A stretch of DNA of 64,000 bases, taken from Zygnema circumcarinatum SAG 698-1b. Taxonomy: Eukaryota; Plantae; Zygnematophyceae. The translations under genes and the position numbers were made by a program. Of the stretch, positions 5,203-57,030 are shown one piece after another. The stretch spans positions 2,136,525 through 2,200,524 of the forward strand of contig CM074816.1 in NCBI GenBank assembly GCA_037447605.1. The letters run 5' to 3'. How positions within the stretch are numbered: position 1 is the stretch's first letter; every line of letters begins with the position of its first letter. The notes beneath the pieces were generated by a model, which did not search any database, was not told the origin of the DNA, and saw only the letters and a program-made list of their open reading frames with translations.

Positions 5203-5207
5203 TCCGC

Positions 5208-5306: not shown

Positions 5307-5663
5307 CCCCGTCCCGTCCCCCTCCCCGCCCGCGGTTCAGGGCCAGGGCAGGCCAGGGCAGGGCTTGGCGCCCGGCCGCCCTGCTCGAGGAGGGGCCCCC
5401 ATGGCGCCCCATGCCCTCATGACACCACAGCCCCATGGCCATGGCCATGACCCTGGCCCAGGCATCGTCAAATGTCAAATGGTTCCCTTAAGCAAAACTC
5501 AGGTTGTTCCCTTAAAGTCACTTCTTTCGTGTACGAATTCCGGTTCGGGATCCGCGGCTCCGCCGACCCCAGCCGTACCGAAATGCGTACCTAGCCAATG
5601 CTTAATTCGCCCGACAGGCTTACGAAATTGATTTGGCGATGGTCAAGGTCTGACTCCCCCTAT

Positions 5664-5689
5664 TACAGTAGGGGATTTCCCCTACTGTA
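5664..5689. repeat. Perfect 12-bp inverted repeat with 2-nt spacer, TA at both ends
   Basis: TACAGTAGGGGA-TT-TCCCCTACTGTA. Confidence 0.9.
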
Positions 5690-6012
5690 TTTGAGGCGTG
5701 CCCATGGTTGACGCGGCCGTACAGCGAGCGGTGCGCGAGTACGGTACGGGACGGGCGGAGGCGGCGGTTGGTGTGCCGCATGCGCATGGCCATGCATGCA
5801 TGCCATGGTCGAATGACGCCATGGGATGGGGGGGCATGGCATGGGATGTCGCGAGGCCAGAAGGGGGGATGGAGGGAGAGTGGCAGGGAGGGAGGGAGGG
5901 AGGAGCGACAGCCACCAACCAGGTGGGGCGGGCGCCTGGCGAGGGCGGGCGGGCGGGCGCGCGTCCATGGCGAGACGGAGCGAGTGAGCCGCGGCCGGCT
6001 GCGGGGTGGGCC

Positions 6013-22770
<16,758 letters not shown>

Positions 22771-34300: not shown

Positions 34301-37300
34301 CGCCCACATGCGCAGGTCCACCAGGTCCTCCTCCTCCCTCCGCATCTTGGATTCCAGTTCCGCCTGCTTGCACCCGATGCGCTCCAAGAAATTTGCCCAC
34401 TCATCTGCAAAAACATGCACATGGATTGTACACGAGGATGACATATTGGAGGTCGAAATTGCACAAAAACAAGGAAGTGATGAAGCAGCATTCAAGAGAG
34501 AAACTGGAAGGCTTCCCCCACCAGGAAAGATCTTTTGCAGATAAAAAAGGATGGAAACGCCATCCTCGTTTTCTGCGCTCAGCTCCTTCATAGAATATGC
34601 CACAATCTCTTCATAGTACGGTGTCATAACGCTGCATAGCACAAACCAAACACTTTAGTGGAAATCTACTTCAAAGCTTGCGAGCCTTCCAAACGCGCGC
34701 CTCCCCCGATCGCAGCGCATGTCTTGCCCCACATGCATGCCACATGCATGCTGAAGGAGAAAACGGCTCACCAGAAGGGCAGCATGCGCTTGACGGGCGG
34801 CGCCTCCGGCATCTTCATGAAGAGCGAGTTCGTGAAAAATTCCAACCGCCGCCGAGCCTCGAGGTTGACAGGCACATCCAACGCCGAGTCCTTCACGGTC
34901 AGAAGCAGATGCAGCCGCTTGGCCTGCCCATCAAACATCCCATCCATCATGTTACGCTGTACTTCAAGCCACACTGCACTTGCAGTTCAAGTGTCTGCAC
35001 ACCGCTGCAGTCGAGTCAGTCGAGTCACTTGCAGTCGAGTTGACCCTAAGGAACTTGCAGTGCTGCAGGCCTATGTCTGCAGATGAAGAATGCAATACTT
35101 CAGCGTTTCTAAGTTTTATCAGGCTCCAATGAACGCCCTCCAGGTCTTGGCTTGATATTGAAGCAAATGAACTGACAAAAAGATCAGCAAATGCTTTACA
35201 AAAATGCGGAAACCTCATAGGATTACTACTTGAGACAGTGCAGGCTCACCGCGCCTGCATCTGTGGGCCATCGGATGGAAGAAAACAGCTGTGGACGGGT
35301 CTTGGCCTCTTGCATCAGAACACTGCTCTCCAGCTTCAGCCTGCGAGGCAGGATATCGCCCGACGGAAATAGGATGGAATGCGGTTAAGGACGAAACATG
35401 GTTCTTTCTGCTATTTCTCAAAATACATGGGATCGATAGGAAAGGGCTAAAAGGCTCCTTGAAATCTGAGGGCAGAATGACCAGTGAGCTGCAGCGGACA
35501 CTCCAAGGGTCGGATGAGGACCTGGTGTCCTCAGAGAGCAAGTCTCGGACGGCAGACTCGTAGAGATCTTGAAGGGCTTTCACCGCTTTCAGATTGCTAC
35601 TGTCATCCTGCCTTTGTACCTGAGACAAAAAACCCATCACAACATTCTCACAGATATGTCGCTCTTTCCTCAGCTCAGGTGGAACATCTAAAAATGGGGA
35701 CAAAGTGCAGCGTCTAGCTGCAGAGCTCAACAAAGAATTAGTAGGAAAGCTGCAGGAGGAGGCTGACCAGAATTGCAGTGAGGGCTGACAGCTTATTATG
35801 CACGGTCGGCAGGTTCTTCAAACGGAAGCTGGTCGCAAAACATTGGTCTCCGATGGCTGTTCCAATATCCGTAAATACTTCATGAATCACCCTGCGTCAC
35901 ATCCGCACCAAGCCATCAAGAAGCAAGCGTCAAATGGACAAATGCACAAGGTTAGCTGTGAGCGTTGTGTACTTCAAAACAAGGAACGAAGTGCTTCGTG
36001 ATTGAAGGAAGACCCTTTTTGCACCTTTGTTCGAAGGTCGGTCCACGACTAGAGTCTGCCACAAGATCCAAAAGAAACTTCTCCAACGTCTCATACAGCT
36101 CTGCCGCAGCACTTCGCATGTACTCGTCCTCGCAAACCTTCTTCCACAACTCGCCGTCTCCGCTCTTGTGTGCGACCGCGAGACCCATCGCGAGGAAGAT
36201 CTGCACCCAGACTCCCTTCAAACTCCCGCTCAAACCCACAAAAAAAAGTTCCGGGTTGGGTACCCCCCTGGTTGCTAGCTTCCACAGGCATGCATGGAAA
36301 AGGGCAACCTCACTCCGATAAAGTGGAAAGCCGGCCTCACCTGATTGGCTAGCAGAAAGAGGGGCCATTGCACCAACTGGCTCTCTCCAGAGTTGGACGG
36401 CATCAGCAGCAGGTCCACCTCCCTGCAAACCACCGGCACTTCAAAAGGTCACTCACAACCACAACCCCATCGACCAGTCTGCAAGCACGTTCCTTCCAGA
36501 TGCTGCTCATTACTTCCAAATTCCCAACAGAGTGAAAGAATGGCCATTTACACACCATCATCATGCATTTCTATCCCAACAAGGACTTCTTGAGAACGTG
36601 ATGGAAAGAAAAGGCTACGGTTCAATGAGATGAAGACATCAAAAGGTGACAATGTAGCAATTGCCGAGTGCGAGAGACAAGAGGGCGACATGACGCACTT
36701 GTTGCTGAGGTAGTCCTCCTCGCGCAGAGTGCGGATGATCTCGTTCCACGCCATGGCGAAGCGCCGCGCATTCTTCCGCCCACCCGCCTGCCATCGCACA
36801 ACGCACCGCTACCTCATAAACGTCACAGCTTTTGACGTCTTTAGTTTTGACAGCCCATTACACTACCTTGAAAGTTCGTTCATGAACATAAGCGACCAAG
36901 TCTGTACAGAGGCAGGCAACGCAGCCCCAACAAATTCCTTCTGGAATACCTCCGGTGGATTGTCTCCACTCACCTCAAAGGCTGAACCGAAGGACCTGGT
37001 GGTGGAGCTGCAAACAAAGGCGTCAAGCAGGCTGCCATCTCAGAATGCCATAATGGCTCAAGACTCTGAGAGTTTCTAACCACTCTTGACAGACAAGTTA
37101 CATCCGAGGGCGTCAAATGTTGAAATCATTTCAACACGAGAGGCACGTTTCAGCTCTTTCTTGAAATGCAGAACAAAAATCAAATAGTTTAACGGAAGCT
37201 GAGAAAGTTCATTCAAAAAACACTAACCCCGTACTTGCTCTCGACGAACTTCCATGTCCTGTAAAATACTTGCACCCGACTCTCACTACAATTGGCACAC

Positions 37301-40300
37301 AGCAAGATGAGTGTGCGGAAGACCCAGTCTGCCATACTGCGTCTTTTCGAAGGAGGTGAGAGGCTGCAGGTTGCGTGCGAACGCCTCCGGGAAGCTGCGA
37401 AAGCGCGCGCGAAGCATCCCCAGCGACCGGATCTGCCAACAGATCCGAGATCAGATTAGATTAAATGAGAGATGAGATTAGATTTGAGATGCTCCATCTG
37501 TCAACAGATGCAACTTTGAGCCTTTCTGGTGGGTCTTTCGGGCCGCATGGGACCGGTCAGGCAGCCCTGCCGGCGGTAAAGGGGAGGGAGGGGCCCACCT
37601 CTCCCAGATGCCACCAGGCCCCGATCACTCCCCCGCCAATGGCCGACAGCACCGTGTACCTGCACAAACTTCTCGTACTGGGCTCAACCACTGTCTGCCA
37701 AAATGAATCCGGTGGACATGTTTTCCTTTTGACAAGCTCAAGAAGGTTGTATCTACAGCTCCATTTTCGGTCGTCACAATGAATTTGGGGAAAACAGTAG
37801 GCAAGCTTGCAGCAAGCAAAGCAGCTTCGAGTTGGAAAGGAAGTTCACCAAATTTGAATGTCGAGCATATAGATCTGAAGGCCGAAGAGAAACCCCATGA
37901 TCAAAGAACCACCCGCCAACCCGCGTAAGTCAAGGCTGCTGTGTGAACAACTCACAAAGCGTTTGCATCATTTTCGAAGGATCTCGACGCAACAAAAGGA
38001 CACGCTCAGAAACCAAAATGAGGCAATGTACGGAGACTCTTTTGAAGACCCAGCATTACAGCCTTCCTTGCAGTGCACATCATGAAACACAGACTAAAAC
38101 CGCTTACTGTCATGACAGGTAGCCAGAGAGACGCAACAGTCAGCGCATTATGATTTCCTGCAGAAACACAAGGAGAAAACACAGATTGCCAAGTATAAAT
38201 TATTCAACCGCGGTACAGAACCACGAATACCAGAAAACTGCACGGTGAATGCAGAGAGAAATTAAAGAGGAAGGTACGAAAGAGCAAAGTGATCGCGATT
38301 GGTTGGCGGGCCCACCTCCCGAGACGAGGTCCCGCCATTGGTAGTTGATCTTCGCGAAGTTCACGACGTAGGACGTGGGGGTCACCAGCGGCCGCACCTG
38401 CATGCAATGCTCACTGCTCAACTTCCGCTGAAAATCCCTCAAAGAACGAGGGAGGCTACATACTTTTGTGAAGTCTAACGAGTTTGCATACCTGATAGTA
38501 ATAGCTGAATAGGAACTTGCAAACGAGTACAAGAAACCAGAAAGTCGAGTAACTGCACAGTTCGACCATCCCAGAGAGCTGCCTTGAGTTCTAACTATGG
38601 AAAAGCCAAATTATGAAGGCAACCAAGGCCACCAGCTTCTTTCCTTTCTCGCCATTTCACAAACTCTGAGCACTGCCTTAAGTGTTGCACACAGTAGACG
38701 TGCATAAGAAACACAGAACAAAACAAACAAACACATAAGGGAAGAACCTTTCTTGATTTCATGCAAGCACCCTGACATGAGATGAGAAAGCCAGAAAGCA
38801 GCGAGGGGGGAGTACTGACAGGACTGTGGAAAGCGTGCTTTCGTACATGCCCCTACCGACATACAAATCTTCCTGCACGACAACCCAGTTGGTGAATGGT
38901 TGTTTGTTCACTGCAACAAACCTCTGAATTTTTTCAAGCACTCCCTCACCACTCTCTGAGCATTTACGAAAGTCCATTCATGCTGGAGGTTTTTCCTTGC
39001 AGTTTCGAGACCAGGCACATTGGGCTGACTGCTGCAAATCATTCTTTACATCAGACATTGGACCATGTCAGTCTAATCTATGGTATCTCTCTCTGTACAT
39101 TTGAAACATCGTAAGATCCCATTCTACAAGTCTGAAACTGACTCAGCATGCAACCGAGTCTAAGCCTTCAGCCTTCGAGAAATTCGCAAAGAGCACAGAC
39201 AGTGTCCCTGACCCGGCTTGTTCTGCACGTGCAGGACATCACACCGATGCGCAAAGTAACGGAGCAAAGTAAGACACCAACGGACCAAGAGGCATACCTG
39301 GTAAAACCAGTTGAGGATTCTGAAAAACATCCAGTGGTCCACTTTATCTGTCTGCATACGGAGGCCGGCACAACGCCGGAACAAATTAATGATGACCCGC
39401 GGGACTGTGAAAGCAGCGAGGAGCACCGCGTACAGGCTCAGAAAGGGCCTCGACGAGTTGCCATACTCCTCCAGCATTTTGCTGACCCCCAAACCGCCCC
39501 CCAAACACGCGAAAACGACTTTCCTCAGCCCCCAGAAGCTCTGCATTCTCCACAACGACTGTCCGACAGCGGTGGCGAGCATAAGGAGTGCAATTGCTGC
39601 TTCGCCCCAAGCAAGGACAAGGGCAATGTCCGGCCGCTTTGGGTGGCTTACATGCATGTGTAGGTGAGCACGAGCGCCCACGTGGCGGCCAGCAAGAGGC
39701 GCAGCGCTTTGCGCAGGACGGCGGTCGGATGCATGCTGCGGTATGCGCCGACGGCCATCATCATGTCCGTACAGGCTACACTCCAACCCGTCCCCAATGC
39801 ACAGGGGGAACGTCAGAAACTGGAAGCGACTATCCAGGGCCGAAGGGAAGGCCAAGCCAATTCTCTGGCAATGAAGCAGAAGAAGACTACTCAATACTGT
39901 AGATACATCAATACCGGCCATGGCAACTCACCGCTTAAACACTGCATGATGGAAATAGTTGGAAAAATGGTGAGGACTTTCTCCAAAGTGTACAGGCTGT
40001 TGGATCCGCTAAAAGCGAGGATCACCATGGCCTGCGACCCACCAGACTTCGCCATTAACAACATTCTGGCCCACTCCTTGCGTGCAACTCTACTGAGACA
40101 CATGCCGACAAATGCAAGGAAAGTAGAACTGTGTCTAGAAACCGATTAGAACATGGCAATTTTTGAACAAAATGTTTCGTTGAGTAATTAAGGTTACTTG
40201 CTTAAGTCAAGTTATCCAAAATTAACCAGAATGAACAACAGTCAACTGGACGAAGTCATGAACATATCATTATGTACAAAAAAGGAATCCATGCGTTACA

Positions 40301-43300
40301 AGATAAATCACCTGCAACATAACAATCAAGAAAATCCACAGGCGATCAAAGCTGTGAAATATGTGCCAAAATGTTCGCCATTCCACAAAATTTGTCTTGC
40401 TCAAGCGGCGAGCTCGGTTGGTCGGAGGTTGACGCAATCTCGCAAAGGCCATTGGACCGTTGGAGGAAGGGGCCGCATCGTGAGATGAGCCGCTTTCCTG
40501 CCAGTTCGTGCACCCCAACCCGGGACTGGTCAGCTTCTACCACCGCCAACCAGCTGCAGATTCGGCAAACGTGTGAAGAGGAATCGTTTTGAAAGCATCA
40601 TCGCTCTTTCTAACGACTCGATCTACAGAAAGTCAGAAAAGCAGGACTTTGTGCTTTGTGAGGATTCAACGTGCTAGGCGTAGAAAACATGTCTTCAGCA
40701 ATTTACCAGCTTCCACTCAGTGCCAACCTAGAGGAGACTGAACTACCGCCGAATGAGCTCTCTGTTCCGAACTAGAGGACGAGAGTTTGCCAACTCTATC
40801 GAGAACCTACGTCAGCTGTTTCCCTTGGCAATCTCAACCGGTTGACAAACTAGACCACATGGTTCAGTCATTCCAGCCATCGTGTCTGCATGATCCATGA
40901 AAACCTAAGCCTCTGGAAGTCATGCAACATTCACCAGTGGAGTAGTGAAGAAGGCGTTGTGGAAATCTATGGGCCAGTTCAGCTCAAAACACCGATTAGA
41001 CCTGGTCAAAAGAAGAAACAACACAGCCCCAACGTCATTATCTCCTTCAGGAGGTCGAGGCTACCCCTGCTTCGACAGAATCGTAATTCAATCAAGTGAT
41101 GGTGCTTTGCACTTAACCAGAAATATTCGTTGAGATCGTCGTATGTCCTCCACGCTTGATGGCCCTTGGCCACCGTGCCGTGCCCCGCATAGTCCGCTTC
41201 CTGTCCAGCACAGCCGCAGAGAATCTCCATGAAGTAAAAACCTGCCGAAGGTCCACCGACAAGAATGAACGCAGGCGCAGCTTTCACAGAAAATCGCTCC
41301 AAGACTGACAACTTCATCGTCTCCAAGCTATCCGATGACTAGCCACTTTTTTGAAATCGCAGGATAAACTTTATGGGACTTGATATCCGAGAAAGGCTGC
41401 AGACTAGTCCGGCAACACACTCGCGGAACGCAACTGCGTCTTAGACTTCACATTCAGCCGCAACCGAAGCCGACTTTAATGATTTAACCAAGTGCCGAGT
41501 ATCCGATTACAGCGACGGTCGGCCTCGTCTACCCTTCATGTTCTCCCGGCCAGTTTTCAAACAACAACAGTAGACACAGCAAAACAAAACGAAAAACCAA
41601 ACCCACAGTCCCATTTTATGGCTAGGTTTGGGTGAGGACCTGCTTGATAACTTGATAAATGGGAGAAATAACGTTCTCAAGAAAAGCATACGGCCCTGGC
41701 TGAAGCTCCGATGCAGATCCGACAGCGATCGCGGCACTGCGCGTCGCAGTTTGCTTTTTCAAGATAGCGGACAGCTCTTCTGCCATCTGCTTTCCCGAAC
41801 AAACCCACACACAGGCGAGCATCGAATGGATACAAGTATTGTACCGAAATCCCAAAAAGAACTGGCCTGATGGCGTTTAGCAGCCATCTGCGACTCATAG
41901 TTGTTGTAGTTGTAATAATCATGCCTATGCATCACTTCATACCACTGCATACATTATGAAAGCGACGGTGGCTTGATCTTTCTTAAAAAGCTTTCTCACA
42001 GACACCGTAAGCATTCGTAAGCATTTCCATTGATGGATGCAGTGTGCGGCGCAGCACCCACCCGGTGGAAGAGGTAGCAGAGGCACTCCGGCAGGAAGCG
42101 CACGTTGGCGGCCTCCCCCCAAATGAGAAGGAACAGCGCGGCCTGCACCAGCTTCGGTATCTCCCCTTGCCCACTGCCCCCCTCCCCCCCGGCCGATCAA
42201 CGCCGGTCAACGCCGGTCAGCGCCGGTCAGCGCCAGCCCCCCCCCCTGGGGGGGACCGACTGGCAAGCGGAGGAACTGAACTGCAGTCGGCCGACGTACC
42301 TCGCATAGGTCCGATCAGCATGCACATAATCCGCCCATCGAGAAAAATTGTCCAACACCTTTTTGTACAGCTCGTCCACTGCCAGAGGCATTTTCTGCAG
42401 AAATTCCCCGAGCGCGCCCTCTCAGAAAAAAAACCCTTGAATCGAAACCACAAGGATGCTGAAGTAGTAGTTGCCTCAGGCGCATCACAGCAGTCGAAGT
42501 ACTTGTTTCACAAAAAGAAAAATAAAAAAGCAATCATTTGTAGTTAGCATGCCTGTAATCGATGCTGTTTTCTAATTTGCTCCAAATTCACAACCACTGC
42601 CAGCCTTTCCCAAGAGAAGCGGGGCGTGGGGGAGGCCGCACAATACACGAGCGACTCACATCTACGTTTGGAGGGACTATCAACCGAGTTTGAGTATTGG
42701 CTAGTAGCAGCACCACGTGCTCCCTTTGGTTGGCAACGTTGTCTTCCTGCGATGTCGCAACAACTTTCAAATCATTAAAAACAGGATAGATCACATACAG
42801 AAAAAAAATATCACTACAAAAGTAAGCGACTTCAGGAACGGCCTACACTATCAAGCGTTGAAGAAAATGCATTCCCTGCGCACAGGGGAGGACGAGGTTG
42901 GCTTCAGCGAGCACCTGAAATCCGAACACAAACTGCAAAAGTTCAAACACATCCGAAAACTGTGCACCGCTTTCTTTCCGCGGTAGTCCGGCTGTGCGGC
43001 CTATGTAGTCGATGGCAGTCCCAACCTGCGCAAAACACACTTTGCTTCAGAAGGATTTATTGAGACACTTCAGGTGACTGCAGGAGAACTCCTGGTCTGC
43101 ATTTCTAATTGTCAGACAGCAGCAATGCTCACGTGAACATAAAGAGCTGAATACACGCATGGTGCTAACCTCTTGTATCTCCAGAATTGGCGCTTCAGCA
43201 CCTGGAATATTCACAGGTACTATGTTGTACTTTTCCTTCTCAAGTTCGCGGGTCTTGGCAGCTGTCGCTTCAATTTGCTCAGTCAACTGCGCAAACGACC

Positions 43301-44613
43301 ATGCTCGTATGAAAATTGCCGCTTCTGGCAACACACCAGATTCCAACCCGCCACACCACACCCCATGCCTCTCGACTCCTTGCTCCTCCAGCAGCAAGGA
43401 CGAGCAGCCAACACATGTGACGTGCTAAAAACAGAGAGATGGGGTGACGGAGAGAAACGAAGGGGCACGCACCTCTTCAGGGACTTGTGCCGGTGTTCTC
43501 TCCTTAATCTCCTGCAGGACTTTGGCAAGAACTCGTGCTGTTTTCCAAGCTCTGCCAAGCTTTTCTCTGCCCAGCCACCGAAACTCCTTTTATTTGCGAC
43601 GTGCTTTTGGTAAGATAGCAAGAATAAATTCCCGAACGCTAGAAAGGGGTGGAAGAATTGCCAAACAGCTACCTGTTGTTATCCGGATCTTCTTCCAGTT
43701 TTTTTATGTGCTCTTTATAATGCTCAAAGAAATCCTGAATGGCCCTGACATCTGAAGACGGATCGGAGTGCTGGGTCCTCCGCATGCGTCGGCCCTGCAA
43801 GCTTTCACCGAACGATTAACATCAGTCGAGTAGCTGTTTGGCAAATTTTAGGCTCGGATTAGTCGCAAAAAATCTGTGGCCACCCAAATAATTTTCAGCA
43901 CTGGACCTCCTTTTTTATGCTATTAAAAATGGTGCCTCACATACTGCGGCAGTATTCAGTATGCCAGACTCCGTCCATACACGAATTGTAGAAGAAAGCC
44001 AAGATGACAAGCAATGCGTTGCCAGTATGAGTAATGAGTATGTCGCCCGCTACAAAAAAAGATAACCAGGCGCGGTTGCGAGTGAATGCAAACCACATTG
44101 GTTTCCCACTTTACTGCACAAAAATTCCTACCTTGAGAAGGCTATGAAGAGACGTTTTAAACTGCAGTACTCCGCGGCCGTCGGAGTTGGGGTCAAGCTG
44201 CATGGCTTGGTTGTACGCGAAGGTTGTCACTGCATTGCATTCAGAAATCCCGACTTAAAAAATCGAAACAAAAATATTGTAATGATAATGCGCATTTTAC
44301 CATGTTTATCAATGCCTCGCTCCAGGCATTTTGAAAAACGAACAATTAGTTACGTACGTATTCCAGCGACGGCAGAACCCTTCATGCTCTCCACCTCACT
44401 AGCCGCTGTGAGCGTTTCTCCAATGTCCGAGTTGTGGTCCAGCGCGGCCGGCAGCAGCCACGGGTCGTCCACGCGGCTGGCCGGCTCCAGCGAGCGCGCG
44501 GGCGCGGGCCGCGCCTCGCGGTCCTCCCTCTGCGCCTGCAACGCCGCGAGCAGGAGCCGCTCCCATGACCGCACCGCGGCGCTGCTGCTGCTGCTGCCGC
44601 TGACGGACTCCAT
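28314..44613 (-). CDS. CALS: Callose synthase (1,3-beta-glucan synthase, GT48), GSL8/GSL10 (CalS9/10)-type, many exons
   Basis: Exon 1 44613-44358 ([10 protein letters not shown]...[12 protein letters not shown]), followed by [26 protein letters not shown]|..[24 protein letters not shown]-like, [129 protein letters not shown]. It ends [21 protein letters not shown] (stop 28314-28316). The N- and C-terminal signatures fit the GSL8/10 clade. Confidence 0.95.
33037..33074. repeat. (GGGA)n microsatellite in a callose synthase intron
   Basis: About 9 copies of GGGA. Confidence 0.9.
42201..42255. repeat. 10-bp tandem repeat (CGCCGGTCAR)x3 followed by a C-run/G-run hairpin, intronic
   Basis: cgccggtcaa cgccggtcag cgccggtcag, then C10-T-G8. 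Confidence 0.75.
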
Positions 44614-44615
44614 GG

Positions 44616-44727
44616 CTCCCCTCCCCTCCCCTCCCCTCCCCTCCCCTCCCCTCCCCTTCCCTCCCCTCCCTCCCCTCCCTCCCCNNNNNNNNNNCCCTCC
44701 CTCCCCTCCCTCCCCTCCCTCCCCTCC
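44616..44727. repeat. (CCCT/CCCCT)n polypyrimidine tract (G-rich on the transcribed strand of the minus-strand callose synthase 5' leader)
   Basis: Low-complexity tract abutting the ATG at 44613, interrupted by the N gap. Confidence 0.9.
44685..44694. other. Assembly gap (10 N) inside a (CCCT)n tract
   Basis: Run of N at 44685-44694, flanked on both sides by CCCT/CCCCT repeats. Confidence 0.99.
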
Positions 44728-44830
44728 TCCGCGGCCTCCCCACTCTCGCTCCCTCTCTCGCCCCCTCTGATTGAGCGCGCACGGGCGCCAACTGGCGGAG
44801 GGAGGCGCTAGGTCAACGCCGCCTCCTGCC

Positions 44831-44850
44831 GTACGGTACGGTACTGTACG
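44831..44850. promoter_or_regulatory. Tandem GTAC array with 5-bp period (SBP/SPL-type core motif)
   Basis: GTACG GTACG GTACT GTACG. GTAC is the established core bound by SBP-domain factors; function here is inferred. Confidence 0.45.
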
Positions 44851-44915
44851 GTGCCGCGTTGACTTGCGCGTTGGACCGACCGCGCCGCTTCCGCGCTCCC
44901 GCGCTCGCTCCTCTC

Positions 44916-45010
44916 AGGGAGAGGGAGGGAGAGGGAGAGGGAGAGGGAGAGGGAGAGGGAGAGGGAGAGGGAGAGTGAGGGAGAGGGAGAGTGAGGGAGA
45001 GAGAGGGAAG
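44916..45010. repeat. (GAGGGA)n polypurine microsatellite upstream of the plus-strand callose synthase ATG
   Basis: gagagggagggagagggagaggg..., ending a few nt before the ATG at 45018. Confidence 0.9.
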
Positions 45011-45017
45011 GGCAGCC

Positions 45018-48000
45018 ATGGCGGCCGCACCCGCCGGGAGGGGCGGAGGCGCAGGCGTGTACAATATTGTTCCCGAGGACGCCTCCGCTCCGCATCCCGC
45101 CTTCGACATTGCCGAGGTGCTCCTCGTGCTCGCGCTGCCTACGGGCCCCTCGAGCTCAAACGAGCAATGCTCTTATTTTTTTCACTGAATTAAGCGTAAA
45201 AACTATGGCCTCTTTATTTTATTATTATTATCACCGGCAGGCAGTCTCCCCTCTCACGCTGGGCCCGCCCGCTTGAGCCTGTGCAACAGGTGAGAGCGGC
45301 CGCCTCTGCGCTGCGCGGAGTGCAGAACCTGCGCTGGCCCACCGGGCGCGCTCCGCAGAGGCGCGGCGCGGACGTTCTCGACTGGCTGGCGGCCATCTTC
45401 CGGTTCCAGGTGCGCCCCCGCCCCCCCCGCTCCGCTCCGCTCAGGGTCGCAGGGCACACACCGGCTGACGGCGGCGCAAGGGCGGGCCTTTGAGCGCAGA
45501 GTGGCAATGTGCGCAACCAGAGGGAGCATCTTTTGCTTTTGCTTTCCAACACTCAAATGCGCCTCTATCCACGCTCACCAACAAACGAGGTTCTCCACGA
45601 AGGACACTTCCCTGCCCGCCCTCCTTGTCGTTCCCTCGTTCTTTTCTCACCTCTTGGGCTTTGAAGCTACCCGCCTTAGTTTTGTTCAATGAAGAGAATT
45701 TGTACCAAAAACTGAAAGTTACATCATGGTCAGGGCAAGGTGTGGCTGGAGTTTGAATCAACGTTTTTTATTTTTTTTTGCATGCCTTCGTGGGCACAGC
45801 CTAGGTCTGAGGTGCATCTCAAGTCTGAAGTCGTCACTTCAGTCTGTGAGAAGCTCACGGCAAATTATACATCGTGGTGCAACTTCCTCCGTATAAAAGT
45901 GAACTTGCTGTGAGTCGCATCCCTTGACCTGCGCGTGCTTGCCGGCACTGAACGAAAATGAATTTTTTATTCAAGCTCGTTATTGCAAGAGCGTGGTAGC
46001 CAACAGAGTGGACCTTGTCAATGGCAGGCCAAGTGGGGGCCGCGCACTGGGGCGTCCGATGGAGCTGATTTATTGCGCACTCTACTTGCTTATTTGGGGA
46101 GAAGCCGCCAACGTGCGGTTTATGCCAGAATGCCTCTGCTATATTTTCCACCATGTGGGTCAGCCTTTCCCTCGCACTCCTTGTTCCTAAGATCAGCAGC
46201 TCGTTCGCTTGTTGAGGGGCCAGTAGGGCCACTGCAAACATACCTCGAGGCCTTTTCTTTTTGTCTGCTAACTTCAGAAATGTCTCAGTGTTTAATTTAA
46301 GCAGCAAGCGCCTTGGAGCTGACTGCAGATGGCTGGCGAAGTGAACGAGCTGGCAACGAGTTCACCTGCGTCGCTATTGACCGAACATTCAGTTCCACAG
46401 GACAGCCAAGGTGACGGCTTCCTCGAGCATGTCATCCAGCCTCTGTACAACATCGTCAAGGCGGTGAGTGCGATGTTGCCCTTTACTGTCGGGTCGGGCG
46501 AAGGCTGACAGGTAGGCCGGGCTTGCTTGCCGGAAACCGCGCGTTCTCAAGGGCGGGCTCCCTCTGCCTCTGCCTCTGCCTCTTATCATGACTCTTACTC
46601 TGCCTCTTGCGCGTGCAGGAGGCGGACAGCAGCCGCGATGGCAAAGCGCCGCACTGGGCGTGGCGGAACTACGACGATATGAACGAGTACTTCTGGTGGG
46701 CAGGCCATCGGCCAAACCCTCCAAGGGGTTCATGTGTCAGATCTTTCTGTCTGCCTTCGTACTCCCAGCAAATGATTATCGCGAAATCCGTACACTCATC
46801 GGAACAGGATTACGGTCCTCGAACTTGCTTGTGTCCTTTGCTAGAAAGTCTCTACCTCACCACTGTCCTTACGTCTGACTTGGTGTTCGAACTCGTGAGC
46901 GACACAGAAGCCGGTTCATTGCCTGTGGACAACAATAACATCGCTACGGTTTTCCTGTCCTTACTTGAAGCGTGGAGGCCTTGCAGGAATAAACGCTGTT
47001 TTCGCGAGATTGGTTGGCCTCTTCGCCTGACTGGCAGCTATTTTCTGCCACCTGTGAGTGCACAGTCCTCTGTAATTTGTAGAGAAGAGGGAGTCTCTTT
47101 TGAAAGCACAATTGAGGAAACACAATTGGAATGGTTTGTGCCCTTAATTGCTCCAAATGTGTGGATCTACTTTCGTGAATATTGTGTTGTCTCTGCTGCT
47201 TTCCGATATTCAAACTCGCATAAACGACTGTTCGCTTTTTAAACTGGCTTCGTCCTGCATTTACTCTGCAGTAAGACACCGATACTCCCACGGACGGTCC
47301 TTATTTTAATGCAGTGGATGGTCAGGTGATTTACTCACTGGGTGCTGAACGGAGAGGGCTTCGCAGGAGAAGCCGGGCAGGAAGGTGGGGAAGACGGGGT
47401 TCGTGGAGCAGAGGTCCTTTTTTAACCTCTTTCAAAGCTTCGACCGCGTGTGGGTCCTGCACGTGCTTATGTTCCAGGTGCTTCCGGGCGGGCTCCATCC
47501 TTCTTCCTGTGCTGTGAATGCGCCGCTTGCATTAGGATCATGATTGCACAAGGAAATGCCATTTGAGCAAGGTCCGGATTCTCATTCAGGAAGTATGCGA
47601 CGCGGGGTCTCTCGTTTGTATTGTAAGAAGTGGAGCGGACAAGATGAGAAAGATATCCTGTAATGCTGAGCAGATGGATATTCCATGACATCCATTAACA
47701 CTTTTCGCAGTATACACATTGACTAGACGAGCATACGTAGCCATTTCAGACATGAAAGTACCTCGATTTCTTTTGCCTCTAATTTTCTTTCCTTCAGAAT
47801 GGATGCATAGCAAATTCGTCTCCTTTGTGGAGTCCGCGATTCAACAGCGCCTATGTTTATCCCCGCCATTGACTGCCATTGACTGTTGGGAGCGAGCGCC
47901 ATGCATGTGCAGGCCCTTGCTCTCATCGCTTGGGACGCAGAAGCCGCGGACAGGACTCCATGGATGCAGCTCGCCAAGAGTCAGGACACAGTTGCCGTAC

Positions 48001-51000
48001 TGCTCACGTGCTTCATTACGTGGGCATTTCTACGTCTCATATTCGGTACGAAACTGAACCCAATCTTGCCACAACATTTTGTAAGTTTTGCCTTTTTGTT
48101 TGAACCTCCTCACGTTCACGCCTTTTGGACGACAGAACTCTACCATGGCCCTGCCAGCCTCCTATTTTGCCAAAGGGGAGTATCGTGCAAAATTGTCGCA
48201 TCTGCATCAGACAGTATACACTTGTCAGAGGCGTTTACAAGAAAGAACCAAGTGATTTGCTATTTCACCGCTTTGTGCATACGCATAGTGTGTACTTTAC
48301 ACGGGCAGCATTCTGCGGAAACGTTCACAGGCAATGTTAAGCAGAGAATCGCGGCTCCTAATGATGAATTTTGCCGTCATGCAGCCCTTCTGACGGTCGT
48401 ACTCCAGCGGCGGTTGGTGAAGCGTGAGACCCTCATGGTGGGCGTGCGCATGCTGCTAAAAATCGTCGTTGCGGCATTTTGGCTCATTTTCTTTTCCATC
48501 TGTTACTGGTAAGCTCCTTCTCAACGCTTTCAGTTGATGCATTTAGCCACGAAACGAACTCACAGATATCCGTTTTAAGGCATAGCACGTGGCATGATCT
48601 TTGCACGGTGAGGCGTTGTGCGCCGAATTCTTACTGCTGTTGTCCGCATTCTCTCATTAGACTACCATCCGGATGACAAATAACGTTTATCAGCGGACCC
48701 GTCCAACGGCTGCTCGAGTGCAATCACCTCTGTTGGCTGCCATGATCTGAATCCTAACACGTTCAGTACATAAGGAAACTGAGAGTTGCAGCGTTCTAGC
48801 GTATCCGAAACGACAAAGCTCTTATCGCGACTCAGCAACCACGACTGCAGACATGTGCAGAAGGATGATGGGACGTTCTCTGACTAGTGAGCCCATTCAT
48901 TCCCGGGTGTGCAGGCAGATGTGGCGGTACAGGCAGGCCGACCAGTACTGGTCCGGGCGCGCCCAGGGGCGGTTCCGCCTCTTCCTGTACGCCGCGGCCG
49001 CGTTCTGTCTCCCGCAGGCGCTGGGCCTGCTCGCCGCGCTGCTGCCATGGCTCGCACGCGCCATCGAGACCTCCGATTGGAGGGCGGCCTCTCTGCTCAC
49101 TTGGTGGTTTCAGGTGCGGTCCGGTCCTGCCTGCTCCCGCTCCCCCCTCGACCTTACCTTGAGGGTGTGGTGTGCTCACGGCTGGGCAGCCTCTCTCTGT
49201 GCAGAGCCATCTGTTTGTGGGCCGGGGGCTGCTGGAGAGCACGTGGGATACCATATGGTAGGCCCGCACCGCTGTTCAGGCTGCTTCGTACTAGATTCGG
49301 ACGCGTCTGTATGTCATATTCACAATGTAGGAAATAGTTGCTGTGCTGAAGTGTTGACCTTGAGTGGACTACTTTGATGCGACCTGCCTTGTCGCAGTTG
49401 CAGAGAATGAAAAACCAGATTGACGACATGTGCATGTGTGTGACAGTTGAAATGGGGCTTGATTTCTGGGAAAAACAGCTATTCGCTGTTCTGGATTATT
49501 CTACTCGCAGGCAAATTCAGCTTCAGCTACTTTCTGCAGGTTCCTTGTGGCTCTACACTCACAACTGTGCTGTACATGGAGGCGATGAATGCACTATACT
49601 GGTTACCTAATGGAGCTGGAATATGAAAATTTACGGCTTTAATTTCATAGCCCAGTTATGAAAGTCCAATAGAGGCTTTCGCTCAAGGGCGTTCTTCCTG
49701 TACAAAGGCACGGGCACGGCAAGGGCAAGGGCAAGGGGCAAGTGTTAGCAGGTCCTGAAGGTATTTGGTGAAGAATCTCCCTCACTGTCAAGGTGACGAG
49801 AGGAGATAGGTCGTCTTGACTGGCCTGGTCGTTCGGGTGGCAGATCAAGCCTATGGTGGCACCAACTCAGCAGCTGCTTGATCTCGAAGTTGTGTATCGC
49901 TGGCCCAATTTCAACACAGGAAGTGAGTTTTTTTGTACATTGCTCAACGCGTGGAACCATCAACTACCTATTGCATGAATCAAAACAGCGGCAAACCGGT
50001 GCTCCTCCACAGATGATGCTTTTGCGGGCAGCGCTGAGCTGAGCTGGGCGTCTGTGCGGCTGCAGAAAACGTGCTAGCGCTTATCTGCCTCTGGGCGCCG
50101 GCCATCCTGGTGGGCTGGCTCTCCTCCCTCTCCTCCCTCTCCTCCCTCTCCTCCCCCTCCTCCCTCTCCTCCCTCTCCTCCCTCTCCTCCCCCTCCTCCC
50201 TCTCCTCCCTCTCCTCCCTCCTCCCTCTCCTCCCTCTCCTCCCTCTCCTCCCCCTCCTCCCCCTCCTCCCTCTCCTCCCTCTCCTCCCTCTCCTCCCTCT
50301 CCTCCCTCTCCTCCCTCTCCTCCCTCTCCTCCCTCTCCTCCCTCTCCTCCCTCTGCTCCCGCTCCTCCCTCTCCTCCCTCTCCTCCAGCCAAGTGCAGGA
50401 CGGCTCGCTTATCGAACTTTTGGCGGGAAGAGAGGTGAGAGGTGGAGAGTGGGAACTGACTGCTGCCGGGACGCTGGCCGCAGGTCTATGTTATGGACAT
50501 ACAGATCTGGTATTCCGTGCTCTCGTCCGTAGTAGGCCTGCTCTCAGGCCTGTTCAAACATATCGGAGAGGTGCCTCCTGCTGCCTCTTTGTCTCCCTTC
50601 ATGCACCGCAGTCGAAGTGATGCCGAGCTTTCTTCTGACCGGTTTCAGGAAAGGCTTTAACAGTGAAGAAAGGACACACTTTTGACAGGTGTCATGTACT
50701 GGGGGTTCATCCACTGTTCCTACTCCTTCCCAGCCACAGTGGGCGTTTAGTGGCCAGCCCTAGTTGAGGGCTGTAGGAGGAAGCTCATGCGGGAGGGAGG
50801 ACTAAATTTGCTGTCGCAGGCCCGCAATGCCAAATTCTTGTTACTGCGCTTCCAGCATCTTCCCGATGCGGTCTCTTTCAACCTCACTGCCCCGGATGTC
50901 CTCCCTTTGAGGAGGTAAGGCAACAGTCTTGGGATATGGAACAGCGCTTCTGGATTCATGCCCTTGTTGAGAAACAGCTTTGGGCTCGTCATAGCGTGCT

Positions 51001-54000
51001 TTTCCAAAGGAGGAAATTTGCGAGAGGATGTGTGCAGGCGCGCGTTCCTCGGATGGTGGGGCGAGCTCAAACGTTATGGCGGCCAGCTCCGCCTGCGGTA
51101 CGGCCGCCTGCTACCGCAACCTGCCAAGGTGGCACGCGCACACCTCAGCCTGCACCTGCTCACACTCAAAATGGGAGGGCTCTTCTTTGCAGTGCTAGTA
51201 TCGTTGTGTACCCAAACTCTATGCGTGCGACCACCATGATGGACAAGAACGGTGCTTGGTTAGAAGCTGCTGCGAAGATGGTGTTGGAAACATCTTTACT
51301 GATTGACTTGTTGTGTTGGACACAGCGTGGAGACGCACGATTTGCGATTTTATGGAACGGAATTGTGGAGAGCTTCCGTGAAGAAGATCTGATCTCCAAT
51401 AGGTGCACCATCGTCTGCTATAACGTGGTGCTCATGTCCCAGATACTTTGGCCCATCCTCAATCTTTTTGTCCGCACGATTGCGCTTCATTTGATTGAAT
51501 TGGGGAAAGGCCCTTTTTCCTTCCTGCAGAGAAGTGGAGCTGCTGAAGATTCCCGAGCCCCTGTGGAGACTGTCCGTACCACAATGGCCAGCTCTACTTC
51601 TTGCAAATGAGGTGTGTGCAATCTCGCGGAAAGGCATCACCCACGGTAATTTAGCATACAGGACCTCCTTAGAGTAGCAGCTCTGTTGTATAATTGAGGC
51701 AAATGAGCGTTGTTGCTATTCTGCACGAGAATGTTTTCGTCTGCGCTGACGCATCTTTGGAAGGCAAACTTCTTCGTGGCACCTTTTTGTTCATAGTTCT
51801 TGCAAAACATAATCTGTTTCGGCATCAACACTGCGGACTTTAACTTGCTGGACAGGAGTTTCAGCACAGCTTTCAAAATTGCTCGCTGAATCCTTTTGAG
51901 TCATAGAACTCCAGAGAATAACTCGATCGCTCGTATTCTCTGCACTATCCCAGCATGCATGCTCTGCTCGCGTGTTGCAGAGCATCTTGCGAGATGCTCT
52001 GCGGCGCATGCTTCGTTGACAAGTTGTGGAGTCCCATGGCTTAGCACGAAAGCAGAGAGGCAGAGGCAACAAAGGTTTCTGACATTACTTCCCACCCGCA
52101 TGCAGCTGATGCGCGCTGTGACGCTAGCCAGCGCGTGGAGGGGCAGCAGCAGGAGCCTGTGGCGCCGGGTGTGCGCGAAGGAGTACCGCCGCTGTGCCGT
52201 TATCGAGAGCTACGAGGTCCTCAAGTGCGTGCTGCGGCGCATAGTGGCGGCGGAGGCGGAGCGGGCGATGCTCGCAAAGGTTGTGGAGGTAGTCGACGCG
52301 GCGACCGCTGCAGGCACAGGGCCCGACCACGACTTTGGAAAGTCCCTGCACGCGGAGGCCCTCCCTGCTGTCCGTACAAAGGTGGCGGACCTCCTTTGTG
52401 CCCTCAGCAAGCGGCCCGAGCAGGGGGCAGCCGGGGGAGTGGTGAAAGCTTTGCAGGACCTGCACGAGGTTGTGGTCAACGACCTTTTTAAGCCCGACGT
52501 TCTTCGCATGCTACAACAGCACAACGTTTTTCCGTCGTCTTCAGCTTCGCCTCTTTATGTTGATGCCATAACTCTTCCTGCGGCAACAGACGATGCTTTC
52601 TATAAGCAGGTTGTGCGGCTGCAGACGATTTTGACCACCAACACCCCGATGTTGCAAGTCCCGGCTAATCTCGAAGCTCGGCGGCGGATGGCCTTCTTTT
52701 GCAATTCTGTGTTCATGGACATGCCGTCAGCGCCGAAGGTGGAGCACATGCGCTCGTTCTGCGTGATGACGCCGTACTACAAGGAAACGGTCGCGTTCAA
52801 CAAGAAGGAGCTCACAACTGAGAACGAGGATGGCATCACCACTCTCTTCTATTTGCAGAAGATTTTTCCTGATGAGTGGGAAAACCTCGAGGAACGACTG
52901 GGATGCAAGCAACGTCAGATGTGGCAGATGGACGGCGGCCATGAAATTTGTCTATGGGCATCCTACCGGGGCCAAACATTGACTCGCACAGTACGAGGAA
53001 TGATGTATTATCGACGGGCTTTGGAGATGCAGGCATTGCTGGAGGAGGGAGAGGATGGGGACGAGCCATCAGGGTTCTTACGAGATTTGGGAGAGAGAAT
53101 TGCAGGCGAGGAAAGTGTCGCTCTCCTACCAATCCGCAGTCATGTCCAGAGGGCTCCGACTCAATCCGCACGGGCCCGGATGCTTTGCAATTTGAAGTAT
53201 ACATATGTGGTCACTTGCCAGGTGTATGGCAAGCAGAAGAAAGAAGGCGATCCCAAGGCCGCAGCCATCTTGGAATTAATGAAGAAGTATGAGGCACTGA
53301 GAGTGGCTTACGTTGATGACGAGGGCGGAGCAGTATACTCAGTTCTTGTCAAATGGGATTCCGTTACAATGGCAGAGCAGGAAGTGTATCGCGTGCGGTT
53401 GCCCGGACCCATGAAGCTGGGAGAGGGCAAGCCGGAGAACCAAAACCATGCCATCATTTTCACAAGAGGCGATGCTTTACAGACAATTGACATGAATCAG
53501 GTAGAGTGACCCCACAGACATGATTTTCACTGACAGGTGACAATTGGCACATTCGACATGGAGAATGTTTTTCATAGGCGTGTACCTCTCACGTGTTCGG
53601 TGTTCTAAGCCTGCCGGAGCCCACTGTTGAACAGCGATTCGCATGCCATTCTGCTGATTGTCGACCAGACGTAGGACGGCAGAATGTGGGCAGTGCCCCT
53701 AACCGCAGCAGCGGTGTGCAGGAAAACTATTTGGAGGAAGCCCTGAAGCTGCGTAACCTCCTTCAAGAGTTCGATCGTTTCGCCGGTGTGCGGCGGCCCG
53801 CCCTTTTGGGCCTGCGCGAGCACGTGTTCACGGGGGGCATCAGCTCGCTTGCAGGGCTCATGTCGGCGCAGGAGACGGCCTTTGTCACGCTCGGTCAGCG
53901 AGTGCTGGCAAACCCGCTCAAGGTCAGCAAGATGCTCCTTCTTCTACCTTCCTGCATAGAGGGGGCGGGCGGCGGGTTCAGTAAGGGTTCAGTAAGGGTT

Positions 54001-57000
54001 CAGTAAGGGTTCAGTAAGGGTTCAGTAAGGGTTCAGTTAGGGTTCAGTAAGGGTTCAGTAAGGGTTCAGTAAGGGTGAGGAAGGGGTGCCGCTTCTGGTG
54101 GGGGGGGCACTCACGGTTGTTCTCTGTCATGGCTGCGAGTTTTGGGTTTCTCCATTGACAACAGACTCTCTCCTTACACGTGCCAGGTCCGCATGCACTA
54201 TGGCCATCCTGACGTATTCGACCGCCTATGGTTTATCACACGGGGCGGCGTCAGTAAGGCGTCTCGCGTTATCAACATATCGGAGGACATATTCGCCGGA
54301 TTCAACTGCACACTTCGCGGCGGCACAGTCACTCATCACGAGTACATGCAGGTGGGCCATGGCTGCCGAAGCTGGCAGGGGAGGCTCCATGATCAGGCAC
54401 TTGTGGGAGAGTTAGTAGCCTTATCGCCTGAATCATTCGGGAAGACCGGCTGCTGAAGGCACAAAGCTGCACGGCCATGCTTACATTTCATTGCAAGCAG
54501 AGTGCAGTCAAGTCTCATGCATGCCCGTCTCGCTCCTCCTGTTGGGTCTTGTCCACTTGTCTTAATTGCGATGCACAGGATGGAGGTGGGACAAATGCGG
54601 GCTCAATTGAACAGCTTTGAGCACGTGTTTGCGTGTGGGGGTGGCGCAGGTGGGGAAAGGGCGCGATGTAGGGCTGAATCAAATAGCGCTTTTTGAAGCC
54701 AAAGTCGCCAGCGGCAACGGGGAGCAGACACTGTCCCGCGATGTATATCGGCTTGGTCACCGGCTTGATTTTTTCCGAATGCTATCTTTTTACTATACAT
54801 CCGTGGGGTTCTATGCATGCACGATGCTGACTGCTTTCACTGTATATGCGTTTCTATGGAGCCGATGCTACCTGGCATTATCAGGCGTGGAGGATGCGCT
54901 AGCATTGGATACAAACAAATTCAGTCAAAAAGCACTGATTACAGTGTTAAATCAGCAGTTCCTTGTGCAGGTAAGGGGAGGACCGCTATACAGTCTTCTA
55001 GTATATGCAAGCGGGCAGATGATGATGATGTGTTTGCCTCTAAATTGGCATTCTGGCTTTCACTGATGTTGTAATCTTCCACTGCCGTTGATGCAAGACC
55101 TTAAGGACAAGCATGAGAGTGAAGCGATGATTTATGTGTAGGCAGAAGTTCTGATGGGATAAAAGTTGTACATTGAAACTTTTTGAAGAAGGGCAGGAGT
55201 AATATACGCTGATTAGAGGCTGTTGCTCGAGCCTTACGGTGCGGATCGATTCAAATCTGCAGATTGGAATCTTCACCGCACTCCCCATGATTATGGAATA
55301 TGCCCTCGAGTTCGGGTTTCCAGCAGCATTGTGGGATTTCTTCCTGATGCAGCTCCAGTTGGCTTCTGTCTTTTTCACCTTCTCTCTGGGCACAAAAACA
55401 CACTACTATGGCCGCACTATACTCCATGGGGGTGCCAAGGTTGGCCGCCTCTCCCTCCCCCGCCTCAGAGAGGGCATCTATCTGTGATGCGCATGTGTAG
55501 GTTTATGGTTTTCAGGACATTTGGAATGAAGTCTCAGTGCGTTGGTGGTGTTGGGAGGGCTGCAGTACAGGGAAACAGGCCGCGGTTTTGTTGTCCGGCA
55601 CGAAACGTTTGCTGTGAACTATCGCATGTATGCACGGAGCCACTTCGTCAAGGCCTTCGAGCTCATGGTGCTACTTATTATTTACCAGTCGTACACGAAG
55701 CTCAGCTCGGGGCTTTCCTATTACCTCCTCACAATTGCATCCTGGTTTCTCGCTCTTTCCTGGATGATGGCACCCTTCGTATTCAATCCATCTGGGTTCG
55801 ATTGGCTGAAGATGGTAGATGATTGGAAAGATTTCTGTGCCTGGTTGTGGCGCAAAGGGGGGGTGTTGGCGAAGGAGGAGGATTGCTGGGAAGTTTGGTG
55901 GAAGGGGGAGAACATCCACCTGCGTACTACAGGCCCTTGGGGACTTGTCGCAGAGGCCGTTCTTGCACTGCGGTTCTTCTTGTTTCAGGTTAACCACTAG
56001 GCCGGCTCGCCAATGCATTGTTGCCCTGCTTTATATTACCCGATGCGTTGAAGCTGGGTATCCCTCCATCTCTTTCTGCTGCGTCTCGGTTCTCCTGTTT
56101 GTCAGGGTCTGTGCCTCAGAGCGGAGTTGTATTGCGGAGTCTCTTTGTTCCTATGCGAATGCTGACTAACTCGCACACGTGACATTTGTTTCTGTTCGTT
56201 TGCAATTCCCAATTCTGCCGTTCTGTTCGTCGCTGTGCTGCAATGCCACAGTGGGGAATCGTTTATCAGGCAAGTCTCTTGTCCTCTCACTGCGAATTTG
56301 TAAAGATCTCTACAGAAGCTTAGTGGGCAGGCTGCACCTAAGTGGTGGGGATCGTTTGGCTGCTCCATTCCAGACTACCTTCGTCTTTCCCTCTCCACGG
56401 CAGGAGGTTGGCGAATGGCGGAGGGCAACCCCTCCCCTTGTGCAGAAATCTTATTCTGATGAGATCACTTTTTGAGTGCTGATTTAGCGTTGTCTGTCTG
56501 CGTCTGCGCAGCTGCAAGTGACGTCAGGGAGCAGCAGCGTCCTCATCTACGTGTACTCGTGGGGCTACTTCGTGGTCCTCGCCTTCGTCTCCGTCACCTT
56601 GAGCGTTGCGAGGGAGCAGTTCTACGAGAAGCGGCACTTGACGTACAGAGTGGTGCAGCTTGCGGTGTTCCTCTGCGTGGCGGGAGCGGCCCTCGCCGCC
56701 CTCCTCCTCACGAGTTTTGACGTGCGGGACATCTTCGCGAGCGCGGTCGCGTTCCTGCCGACGGGGTGGGGCCTCCTCCAGCTCGCGCAGGTCCTCGCGG
56801 CGGCGCTGCCGGGGGGGGAGGAGTCGCGGCTGTGGGCCGCCGCGGTGGTGCCGACCGCGCAAGCGTACGAGCTGCTGCTCGCGGCCGCCGTGGCGCTGCC
56901 CGTGGCGGTGCTCTCATGGCTTCCGGGCGTGCAGGACATGCAGACGCGCATCCTCTTCAACCAGGCCTTCAGCCGCGGTCTGCAGATCTCTCGCATTCTA

Positions 57001-57030
57001 GTGGGGAAAAAACCCAACCCGGGATTCTGA
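45018..57030 (+). CDS. CALS: Callose synthase (GT48), GSL1/GSL5 (CalS11/12, PMR4)-type, about 29 exons, lacking the N-terminal Vta1-like region
   Basis: Starts MAAAPAGRGGGAGVYNIVPEDASAPHPAFDIAE|VRAAASAL...DVLDWLAAIFRFQ|SGNVRNQREH, matching the GSL5-type HPSLRFPEVRAAAAAL...DLLDWL. Later motifs: [49 protein letters not shown], a large exon 52106-53500 ([50 protein letters not shown]), [12 protein letters not shown]. Last exon 56512-57030 ([24 protein letters not shown]). Confidence 0.95.
50119..50386. repeat. (CTCCTCCCT)n 9-bp minisatellite, about 29 copies, intronic
   Basis: Begins about 10 nt after the donor at 50110 and has a few CTCCTCCCC variants. It generates the spurious (LLP)n, (EGG)n and (GRR)n ORFs. 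Confidence 0.95.
53974..54072. repeat. (GGGTTCAGTAA)9 11-bp tandem repeat, intronic
   Basis: Nine head-to-tail copies, one variant (GGGTTCAGTTA at 54029), inside the intron 53923-54186. Confidence 0.95.

Follow-up and report, generated by a model that had tools for sequence, protein, structure and literature searches.

A head-to-head pair of clade B and clade C callose synthase genes around a putative bidirectional promoter in the alga Zygnema circumcarinatum

Organisation of the locus

Two complete callose synthase genes of the GT48 family are found head-to-head in the genome of the zygnematophyte alga Zygnema circumcarinatum SAG 698-1b, on the two sides of an intergenic spacer of 404 nucleotides (nt) that most likely acts as a single bidirectional promoter. 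The stretch of DNA analysed, called here the window, is 64,000 nt long (assembly GCA_037447605.1, contig CM074816.1, positions 2,136,525 to 2,200,524 of the forward strand), and all coordinates refer to its numbering; besides the two genes, no further GT48 sequence was found within it. The minus-strand gene starts at position 44613 (CAT at 44611-44613) and the plus-strand gene at 45018-45020, and both start codons lie in a GCCATGG context. An initial annotation of the interval 44358-45116, which extends from the end of one first exon to that of the other, had described a GSL8/10-type gene starting at 44613 on the minus strand and a GSL1/5-type gene starting at 45018 on the plus strand, with 404 bp between them and GCCATGG at both ATGs; its coordinates were reproduced, and the context of the start codons was read directly in the sequence. 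The features of the locus are collected in Table 1.

Table 1. Coordinates of the two callose synthase genes and of the elements of the spacer between them
Feature	Coordinates	Strand	Remarks
Clade B callose synthase gene (CalS9/10 = GSL10/GSL8 type)	28314..44613	-	tblastn chain, Pfam, tree placement
First coding exon, clade B gene	44358..44613	-	about 85 aa, begins MESVSG...
Intergenic spacer, putative bidirectional promoter and both 5' leaders	44614..45017		404 nt as written, 394 read
(GGGGA)n/(GGGA)n microsatellite on the sense strand of the minus gene, G-quadruplex-type, holds the gap	44616..44755	-	TRF and G4 regex
10-N assembly gap	44685..44694		inside microsatellite, 72 nt upstream of minus ATG; only N run of the window
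Central dyad; GTCAACGC and GCGTTGAC as inverted arms, with the 4x GTAC array between them	44812..44863		inverted repeat, 26-nt arms, no spacer
(AGGGAG)n microsatellite on the sense strand of the plus gene, G-quadruplex-type	44916..45005	+	TRF 15.3 copies; G4 regex 44917-45012
Clade C callose synthase gene (CalS11/12 = GSL1/GSL5 type)	45018..57030	+	tblastn chain, Pfam, tree placement
First coding exon, clade C gene	45018..45116	+	33 aa, MAAAPAGRGGGAGVYNIVPEDASAPHPAFDIAE; donor GT at 45117

Throughout the analysis the exon pieces were kept unjoined: database searches and Pfam scans were run exon by exon, and in the trees the pieces were entered as separate rows. The reference proteins were callose synthase 12 of Cannabis (P0001), callose synthase 9 of Argentina (P0008) and callose synthase 8 of Magnolia (P0007).

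The coding sequence of the minus-strand gene ends with a stop codon at 28316-28314 and is divided into at least 37 coding exons by at least 36 introns; its exons are free of internal stops, and their tblastn matches are collinear with residues 72-1900 of P0008. Near the N-terminus encoded by the first exon there is a W-E/D-R-L motif, which we take to be typical of long-form callose synthases; exon 2 (44132-44245) aligns to residues 72-100 of P0008, and the long N-terminal region ahead of the FKS1_dom1 domain is made of exons matching residues 72-337 of the same protein. FKS1_dom1 (PF14288) itself was recognised on the exon at 41999-42154, and Glucan_synthase (PF02364) on the exons at 30428-31012 and 31846-32361 (E about 1e-22) and on the exon at 30452-30715 (E = 1.2e-21). 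The Pfam domain Vta1 gave no match on the single short exons of this gene, a result that is uninformative at such lengths.

The plus-strand gene is composed of about 22-25 exons, again with no stops inside them, and its coding sequence ends with the stop codon at 57028-57030. It is collinear in tblastn with residues 48-1767 of Cannabis CalS12, and CalS12 also provides its best database matches. FKS1_dom1 (PF14288) is found on the exon at 46005-46178 and Glucan_synthase (PF02364) on that at 51896-53506 (E = 2.9e-73). The sequence YNIVP lies 15 residues from the start of the protein, and YNI(I/V)P near the start is the mark of a clade-C type N-terminus; the alignment of exon 2 with CalS12 begins at residue 48, and an in-frame stop codon is present 14 codons upstream of the ATG. 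The short N-terminus, without the leader of roughly 180 aa, is judged genuine, since the 404 bp that separate this gene from its neighbour leave no space for upstream coding exons. By their domains and collinearity both genes are callose synthases, with a predicted beta-1,3-glucan synthase activity. Two long tandem repeats lie in introns of the clade C gene, at 50119-50386 (CTCTCCTCC, 30 copies) and at 53974-54076 (GGGTTCAGTAA, 9.4 copies).

Clade assignment of the two genes

In land plants, callose synthases of clade B have roles in the cell plate, plasmodesmata and pollen, and those of clade C in wound and pathogen callose; both clades are thus of central importance in plant cell biology. 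Raw similarity does not give a uniform answer on the clade to which each gene belongs: the plus gene scores highest against clade C (1851 bits, with 1748 for clade A and 1486 for clade B), whereas the scores of the minus gene are ambiguous (clade A 1905 bits, clade B 1812, clade C 1604). Tree placement was therefore needed to establish the clade. Raw BLAST similarity, which as a classifier would assign the minus gene to clade A, was dropped, clade A being slow-evolving and represented by 15 references against 2.

A reference tree of 31 full-length proteins was built with IQ-TREE under a site-heterogeneous model. Chlorokybus and Mesostigma fall outside; clades B and C are sisters (98 in the Shimodaira-Hasegawa-like approximate likelihood ratio test, SH-aLRT), and so are Closterium and the land-plant clade A (98). 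For the placement, the pieces of one gene, taken as a single clade, were tried on every branch of a fixed 27-taxon tree (LG+F+G4), and the alternatives were compared by the approximately unbiased (AU) test. For the 33 pieces of the minus gene the highest likelihood is reached on the stem of clade B; the runner-up is 24 log-likelihood (lnL) units worse, the test rejects each of the 50 other branches (AU <= 0.0023), and the Closterium branch, which belongs to clade A, is 122 lnL units worse. The best position of the 22 pieces of the plus gene is the stem of clade C, where they form the sister group of Adiantum and angiosperm CalS11/12; here the runner-up loses 17.6 lnL units (AU <= 0.013), and a placement on either the B stem or the B+C stem loses 89. 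A few misaligned pieces are present in the placement sets, and the lnL margins far exceed what such pieces could explain. The minus gene is thus a member of clade B and the plus gene a member of clade C, the placement being decisive for both; the two different clades, GSL8/10 and GSL1/5, named in the initial annotation agree with these exon-wise likelihood placements and AU tests.

Adjacent paralogues are mostly young duplicates, and the pair might in principle derive from a recent inverted tandem duplication within Zygnema, in which case the two genes would be young paralogues rather than members of different clades. However, the plus gene loses 89 lnL units when moved to the B stem and the minus gene 26.7 when moved to the C stem, the AU test rejects both positions, and the genes differ from each other in N-terminal architecture and in intron number; such an origin is exceedingly improbable. 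A young, Zygnema-specific duplication was consequently excluded on the likelihood placements of both genes.

Intron positions and the relationship between clades B and C

The sisterhood of clades B and C is the best topology also when the pieces from the window are included (resampling of estimated log-likelihoods, RELL, 0.87), the grouping of A with B being 13 lnL units worse with an AU value of 0.14; without these pieces, A+B is 8 lnL units worse than B+C (AU 0.22), and the RELL support for B+C ranges from 0.79 to 0.87.

Gene structure offers a second line of comparison. The boundaries of fragment alignments proved too noisy for comparing introns and were replaced by a phase-aware splice-site search, which resolved 29 introns for the minus gene and, for the plus gene, 14 real ones. 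Five of these 14 are identical in position and phase to introns of the minus gene; in CalS9 coordinates they lie at 266 (phase 0), 435.7 (phase 2), 821.7 (phase 2), 849 (phase 0) and 1304 (phase 0), and at least two further introns are likely to be shared beyond the five. The structure of land-plant clade C genes is different: these have one or few exons (PMC5683620), and the clade C loci fetched for comparison are single uninterrupted exons, of 5319 nt in Cannabis (L002:10001-15319) and 5640 nt in Adiantum. This usual intron poverty is not found in the plus gene, which has about 20 or more introns. Since introns of the two genes coincide in position and phase, clade C is best understood as having arisen from an intron-bearing, DNA-level copy and not from a retrocopy, so that the intron poverty of the land-plant genes would be secondary.

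The largest exon of the clade C gene (about 52106-53500, plus strand) spans a region that in the clade B gene contains about nine introns (36340-33097, minus strand), and the introns flanking this block are common to both genes in position and phase. The exon looks like the result of a block loss of introns in an otherwise intron-rich gene.

Anatomy of the spacer

The spacer is GC-rich and contains no TATA, no CCAAT and, on either strand, no ATG. Its two ends are occupied by microsatellites. The left, C-rich one is made of CTCCC (14 copies) and CCCTCCCCT (11 copies) and stops 3 nt from the minus ATG; Tandem Repeats Finder (TRF) reports it in three rows (44616-44684, 44619-44727 and 44697-44755), and the regular expression for G-quadruplexes (G4) matches at 44618-44684 and 44695-44724. 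The right AGGGAG array stops 12 nt before the plus ATG. Apart from one intronic array, these are the longest G4-pattern motifs of the window. Across the spacer the GC skew, in bins of 50 nt, switches from -1.0 to +1.0, so that the upstream sense strand of each gene is rich in G and A. The G-rich tract that the initial annotation had seen running up to each ATG, and the rough symmetry it ascribed to the spacer, agree with the TRF arrays and with the flip in GC skew.

Between the microsatellites there is a non-repetitive core (44756-44915, centre 44835.5), and at the centre of this core sits a dyad whose arms, 44812-44837 and 44838-44863, meet at 44837/44838. Folded as single-stranded DNA it reaches -21.9 kcal/mol (z = -2.96), a better value than that of all but one of 200 shuffles. 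Four GTAC cores, the first reading CCGTACGG, are enclosed in the dyad between GGTCAA (which gives TTGACC on the minus strand) and TTGACT; the cores, already listed in the initial annotation as a fourfold GTAC near the midpoint, start at 44831, 44836, 44841 and 44846. TRF describes the array (44831-44849) as GTACG repeated 4.4 times, and by shuffling even a three-copy version is expected only 0.01 times per window. Binding sites of SBP/SPL/CRR1 proteins have a GTAC core, and TTGACY corresponds to the W-box of WRKY factors; the SBP-type GTAC and W-box-like TTGACY sequences of the dyad are candidate sites. The counts of CGCG-box and TTGACY in the spacer are within what 400 bp of GC-rich DNA could give.

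A second head-to-head pair is present in the window at 5054-6013, between a minus ATG at 5054 and a plus ATG near 6013 that belongs to a large BEACH/SPIRRIG-like gene. Its spacer, of roughly 960 bp, is GC-rich, with GTACGGTACGGGAC at 5739 beside TTGACG and with G-quadruplex-type G/C runs on both strands; the two spacers may share a promoter grammar.

The 10-N run that the initial annotation reported between the genes is present and is the sole one of the window. It is non-coding and falls within a single period-9 array that TRF reads through (44619-44727), with an identical CCCT/CCCCT repeat on either side. Since the repeat is the same on both sides and one array crosses the gap, the N run looks like an unresolved repeat length rather than a junction of unrelated loci. 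The possibility that it links non-adjacent contigs, or conceals several kb, so that no short shared promoter exists, has in its favour the position of the gap between the genes and the tendency of scaffolders to join contig ends in microsatellites; moreover, the searches with exon sequences and a metagenome scan yielded no independent contig across the spacer. With the 537-aa exon as query, no database match exceeded 56% identity, so none came from the same or a closely related organism; exon 1 of the minus gene gave no match, and the metagenome scan returned nothing beyond one match at 44% and one partial match at 69%. Such an artefact is nevertheless very unlikely, given the repeat array common to both flanks, the symmetry of the spacer around the dyad, which does not depend on the gap, and the two CALS genes with consecutive identifiers that appear in the passages of the published Zygnema annotation dealing with them (PMC9915684).

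Evidence for co-regulation

The distance between the divergent starts, 404 nt as written, with a repeat length at the gap that is uncertain, is below the 1-kb limit for a bidirectional promoter. In Zygnema circumcarinatum two CALS homologs with consecutive identifiers, Zci_11575 and Zci_11576, are placed in one co-expression cluster (117), described in the passages concerned as rich in leucine-rich repeat (LRR), calcium-signalling and PP2C genes (PMC9915684). These two genes probably correspond to the present locus, or to the equivalent one of a sister strain, the match between identifiers and window being presumed; a divergent pair on one promoter would indeed yield consecutive identifiers and a shared cluster. 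Considering the geometry together with this literature statement, the spacer most likely acts as one bidirectional promoter from which both genes are co-expressed. The co-regulated module proposed by the initial annotation receives in this way an indirect support, coming from consecutive identifiers in cluster 117 that are presumed to be those of the genes of the window.

A single GC-rich promoter lacking a TATA box would switch on both genes together, with transcription starting at the two sides of the central dyad and proceeding outward through G-rich leaders prone to form G-quadruplexes. The candidate W-box-like and SBP-type sites could then tie callose synthesis to stress signalling in the alga. 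A heteromeric complex of the two proteins, which the initial annotation also raised, is a hypothetical extension of this picture.

Origin of the pair

To our knowledge, the origin of the shortened, intron-poor clade C is not settled. Taken as a whole, the locus is best explained, with moderate confidence, as a divergent pair of clade B and clade C genes on a shared bidirectional promoter, inherited from a local inverted duplication. The duplication that produced the two clades would predate the split between Zygnematophyceae and land plants; the latter would subsequently have lost the linkage between B and C, their clade C genes being now intronless and located elsewhere. The pair thus plausibly records the local inverted duplication at the foundation of clades B and C, an origin that is unproven because the B+C grouping is non-significant and no second lineage with such a pair is known. 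The trace of an ancient inverted duplication, as the initial annotation had put it, finds support in the shared introns and in the best-scoring B+C topology, but not in significance of that topology or in adjacency among the land plants compared.

A more detailed course of events can be imagined, in which an inverted copy of the 3' four-fifths of a long-form ancestor landed head-to-head on the promoter of its parent, giving rise at once to a shortened and co-expressed clade C; land plants would later have swapped in an intronless and unlinked retrocopy, hence the intron-poor, unlinked GSL1 and GSL5. This scenario is tentative, and we regard it as possible rather than probable.

Outside Zygnema, synteny was compared mainly among land plants. 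The three GT48 genes of Marchantia are on three chromosomes (Mp3g24830, Mp4g17120 and Mp2g04240; PMC12398305). The only zygnematophyte locus compared, a callose synthase of Closterium, is of clade A and uninformative for B-C synteny. The comparison of synteny that the initial annotation had in mind yielded no B-C adjacency in the bryophytes or in the other land plants compared. The Closterium sp. NIES-65 locus (L001:10001-32788) carries an annotated clade A model of 2406 aa with an N-terminal GWT1 domain, which is probably the product of two neighbouring genes merged by annotation. In Argentina anserina (L003:1-30966) CalS9, of clade B, has a clade A gene of the CalS3/GSL12 type (1958 aa) as its tandem neighbour on the same strand, 4.3 kb upstream; therefore, callose synthases of different clades adjoin in a rosid too.

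Several observations weigh against a shared promoter inherited from an inverted duplication. As regards the spacer, its true length is uncertain owing to the 10-N gap, an uncertainty confined to the length of the microsatellite; the window has many purine/pyrimidine microsatellites, a lack of ATG is nothing unusual (11% of shuffles of the spacer core also have none), and two TTGACY sites per 400 bp are just mildly unexpected. Promoter sharing, in turn, is deduced from the geometry and from identifiers (PMC9915684) presumed to be those of the window's genes, and the searches with exon sequences recovered neither transcripts nor transcription start sites of the two genes. As regards the duplication, the sisterhood of B and C is the best-scoring arrangement yet non-significant, and it could be affected by long-branch attraction. 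Finally, no B-C neighbours were recognised by gene identifiers in Physcomitrium, Sphagnum, Ceratopteris and Ginkgo (PMC10879339 supplement), nor was B-C adjacency seen by gene identifiers in Marchantia (PMC12398305), and nothing GT48-like was found within 10 kb of Cannabis CalS12 or of the Adiantum clade C gene.

The missing adjacency in the land plants compared and the non-significant B+C grouping would suit a secondary juxtaposition, by which unlinked paralogues were brought head-to-head in a later rearrangement of the Zygnema lineage, any co-expression being a by-product of open chromatin and the arrangement telling nothing about how clades B and C originated. This compact genome seems to contain many head-to-head pairs separated by short spacers, as exemplified by the pair at 5054-6013, and the adjoining A and B genes of Argentina anserina indicate that such neighbourhoods can arise. 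On the other hand, the chance that two particular genes among about 16,000-20,000 are neighbours is roughly estimated at 1 in 10,000, and this estimate holds for two specific members of one family; the plus gene retains ancestral introns and is not a relocated retrocopy, and the two genes are orthologous to the clades that are closest sisters in the best tree. A secondary juxtaposition is therefore regarded as unlikely, and the inheritance of the pair from a local inverted duplication remains the preferred interpretation.

Paralogues on a bidirectional promoter are an arrangement of an ordinary kind, and the value of this one lies in the evolutionary clue and in the compact regulatory element that it provides. 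In the algal lineage closest to land plants the locus would preserve an early state of clade C, intron-rich, with introns in common with clade B and physically joined to it, and it speaks against the view that clade C began as a retrogene. A local-duplication origin becomes testable through synteny in other streptophyte algae, and the spacer offers a natural element of 400 bp for studying the co-control of two wall-synthesis genes.

Comparison with known systems

A close likeness is with Zci_11575 and Zci_11576 of Zygnema circumcarinatum, which are also two callose synthase homologs with consecutive identifiers; the passages on these genes do not mention their orientation, a shared promoter, their clade identity or their evolutionary origin (PMC9915684).

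The Arabidopsis proteins CalS9/GSL10 and CalS10/GSL8, for clade B, and CalS11/GSL1 and CalS12/GSL5 (PMR4), for clade C, belong to the same GT48 family and have the same domain order, and those of clade C begin, like the product of the plus gene, with a short N-terminus starting near YNI(I/V)P. Conversely, the Arabidopsis B and C genes are unlinked (AT2G36850, AT4G04970 and AT4G03550; PMC5683620), whereas in Zygnema they are head-to-head and 404 bp apart; introns are few or lacking in the clade C genes of land plants and number approximately 20 or more in the Zygnema gene.

As for the spacer, it resembles known bidirectional promoters, both those of the CpG-island type with a switch in GC skew and those of histone H2A-H2B pairs, in having starts less than 1 kb apart on opposite strands, in being TATA-less and GC-rich, and in a non-template strand that is G-rich for either direction of transcription. 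It differs from them in that its leaders are pure microsatellites and the genes it separates are ancient paralogues of one enzyme family.

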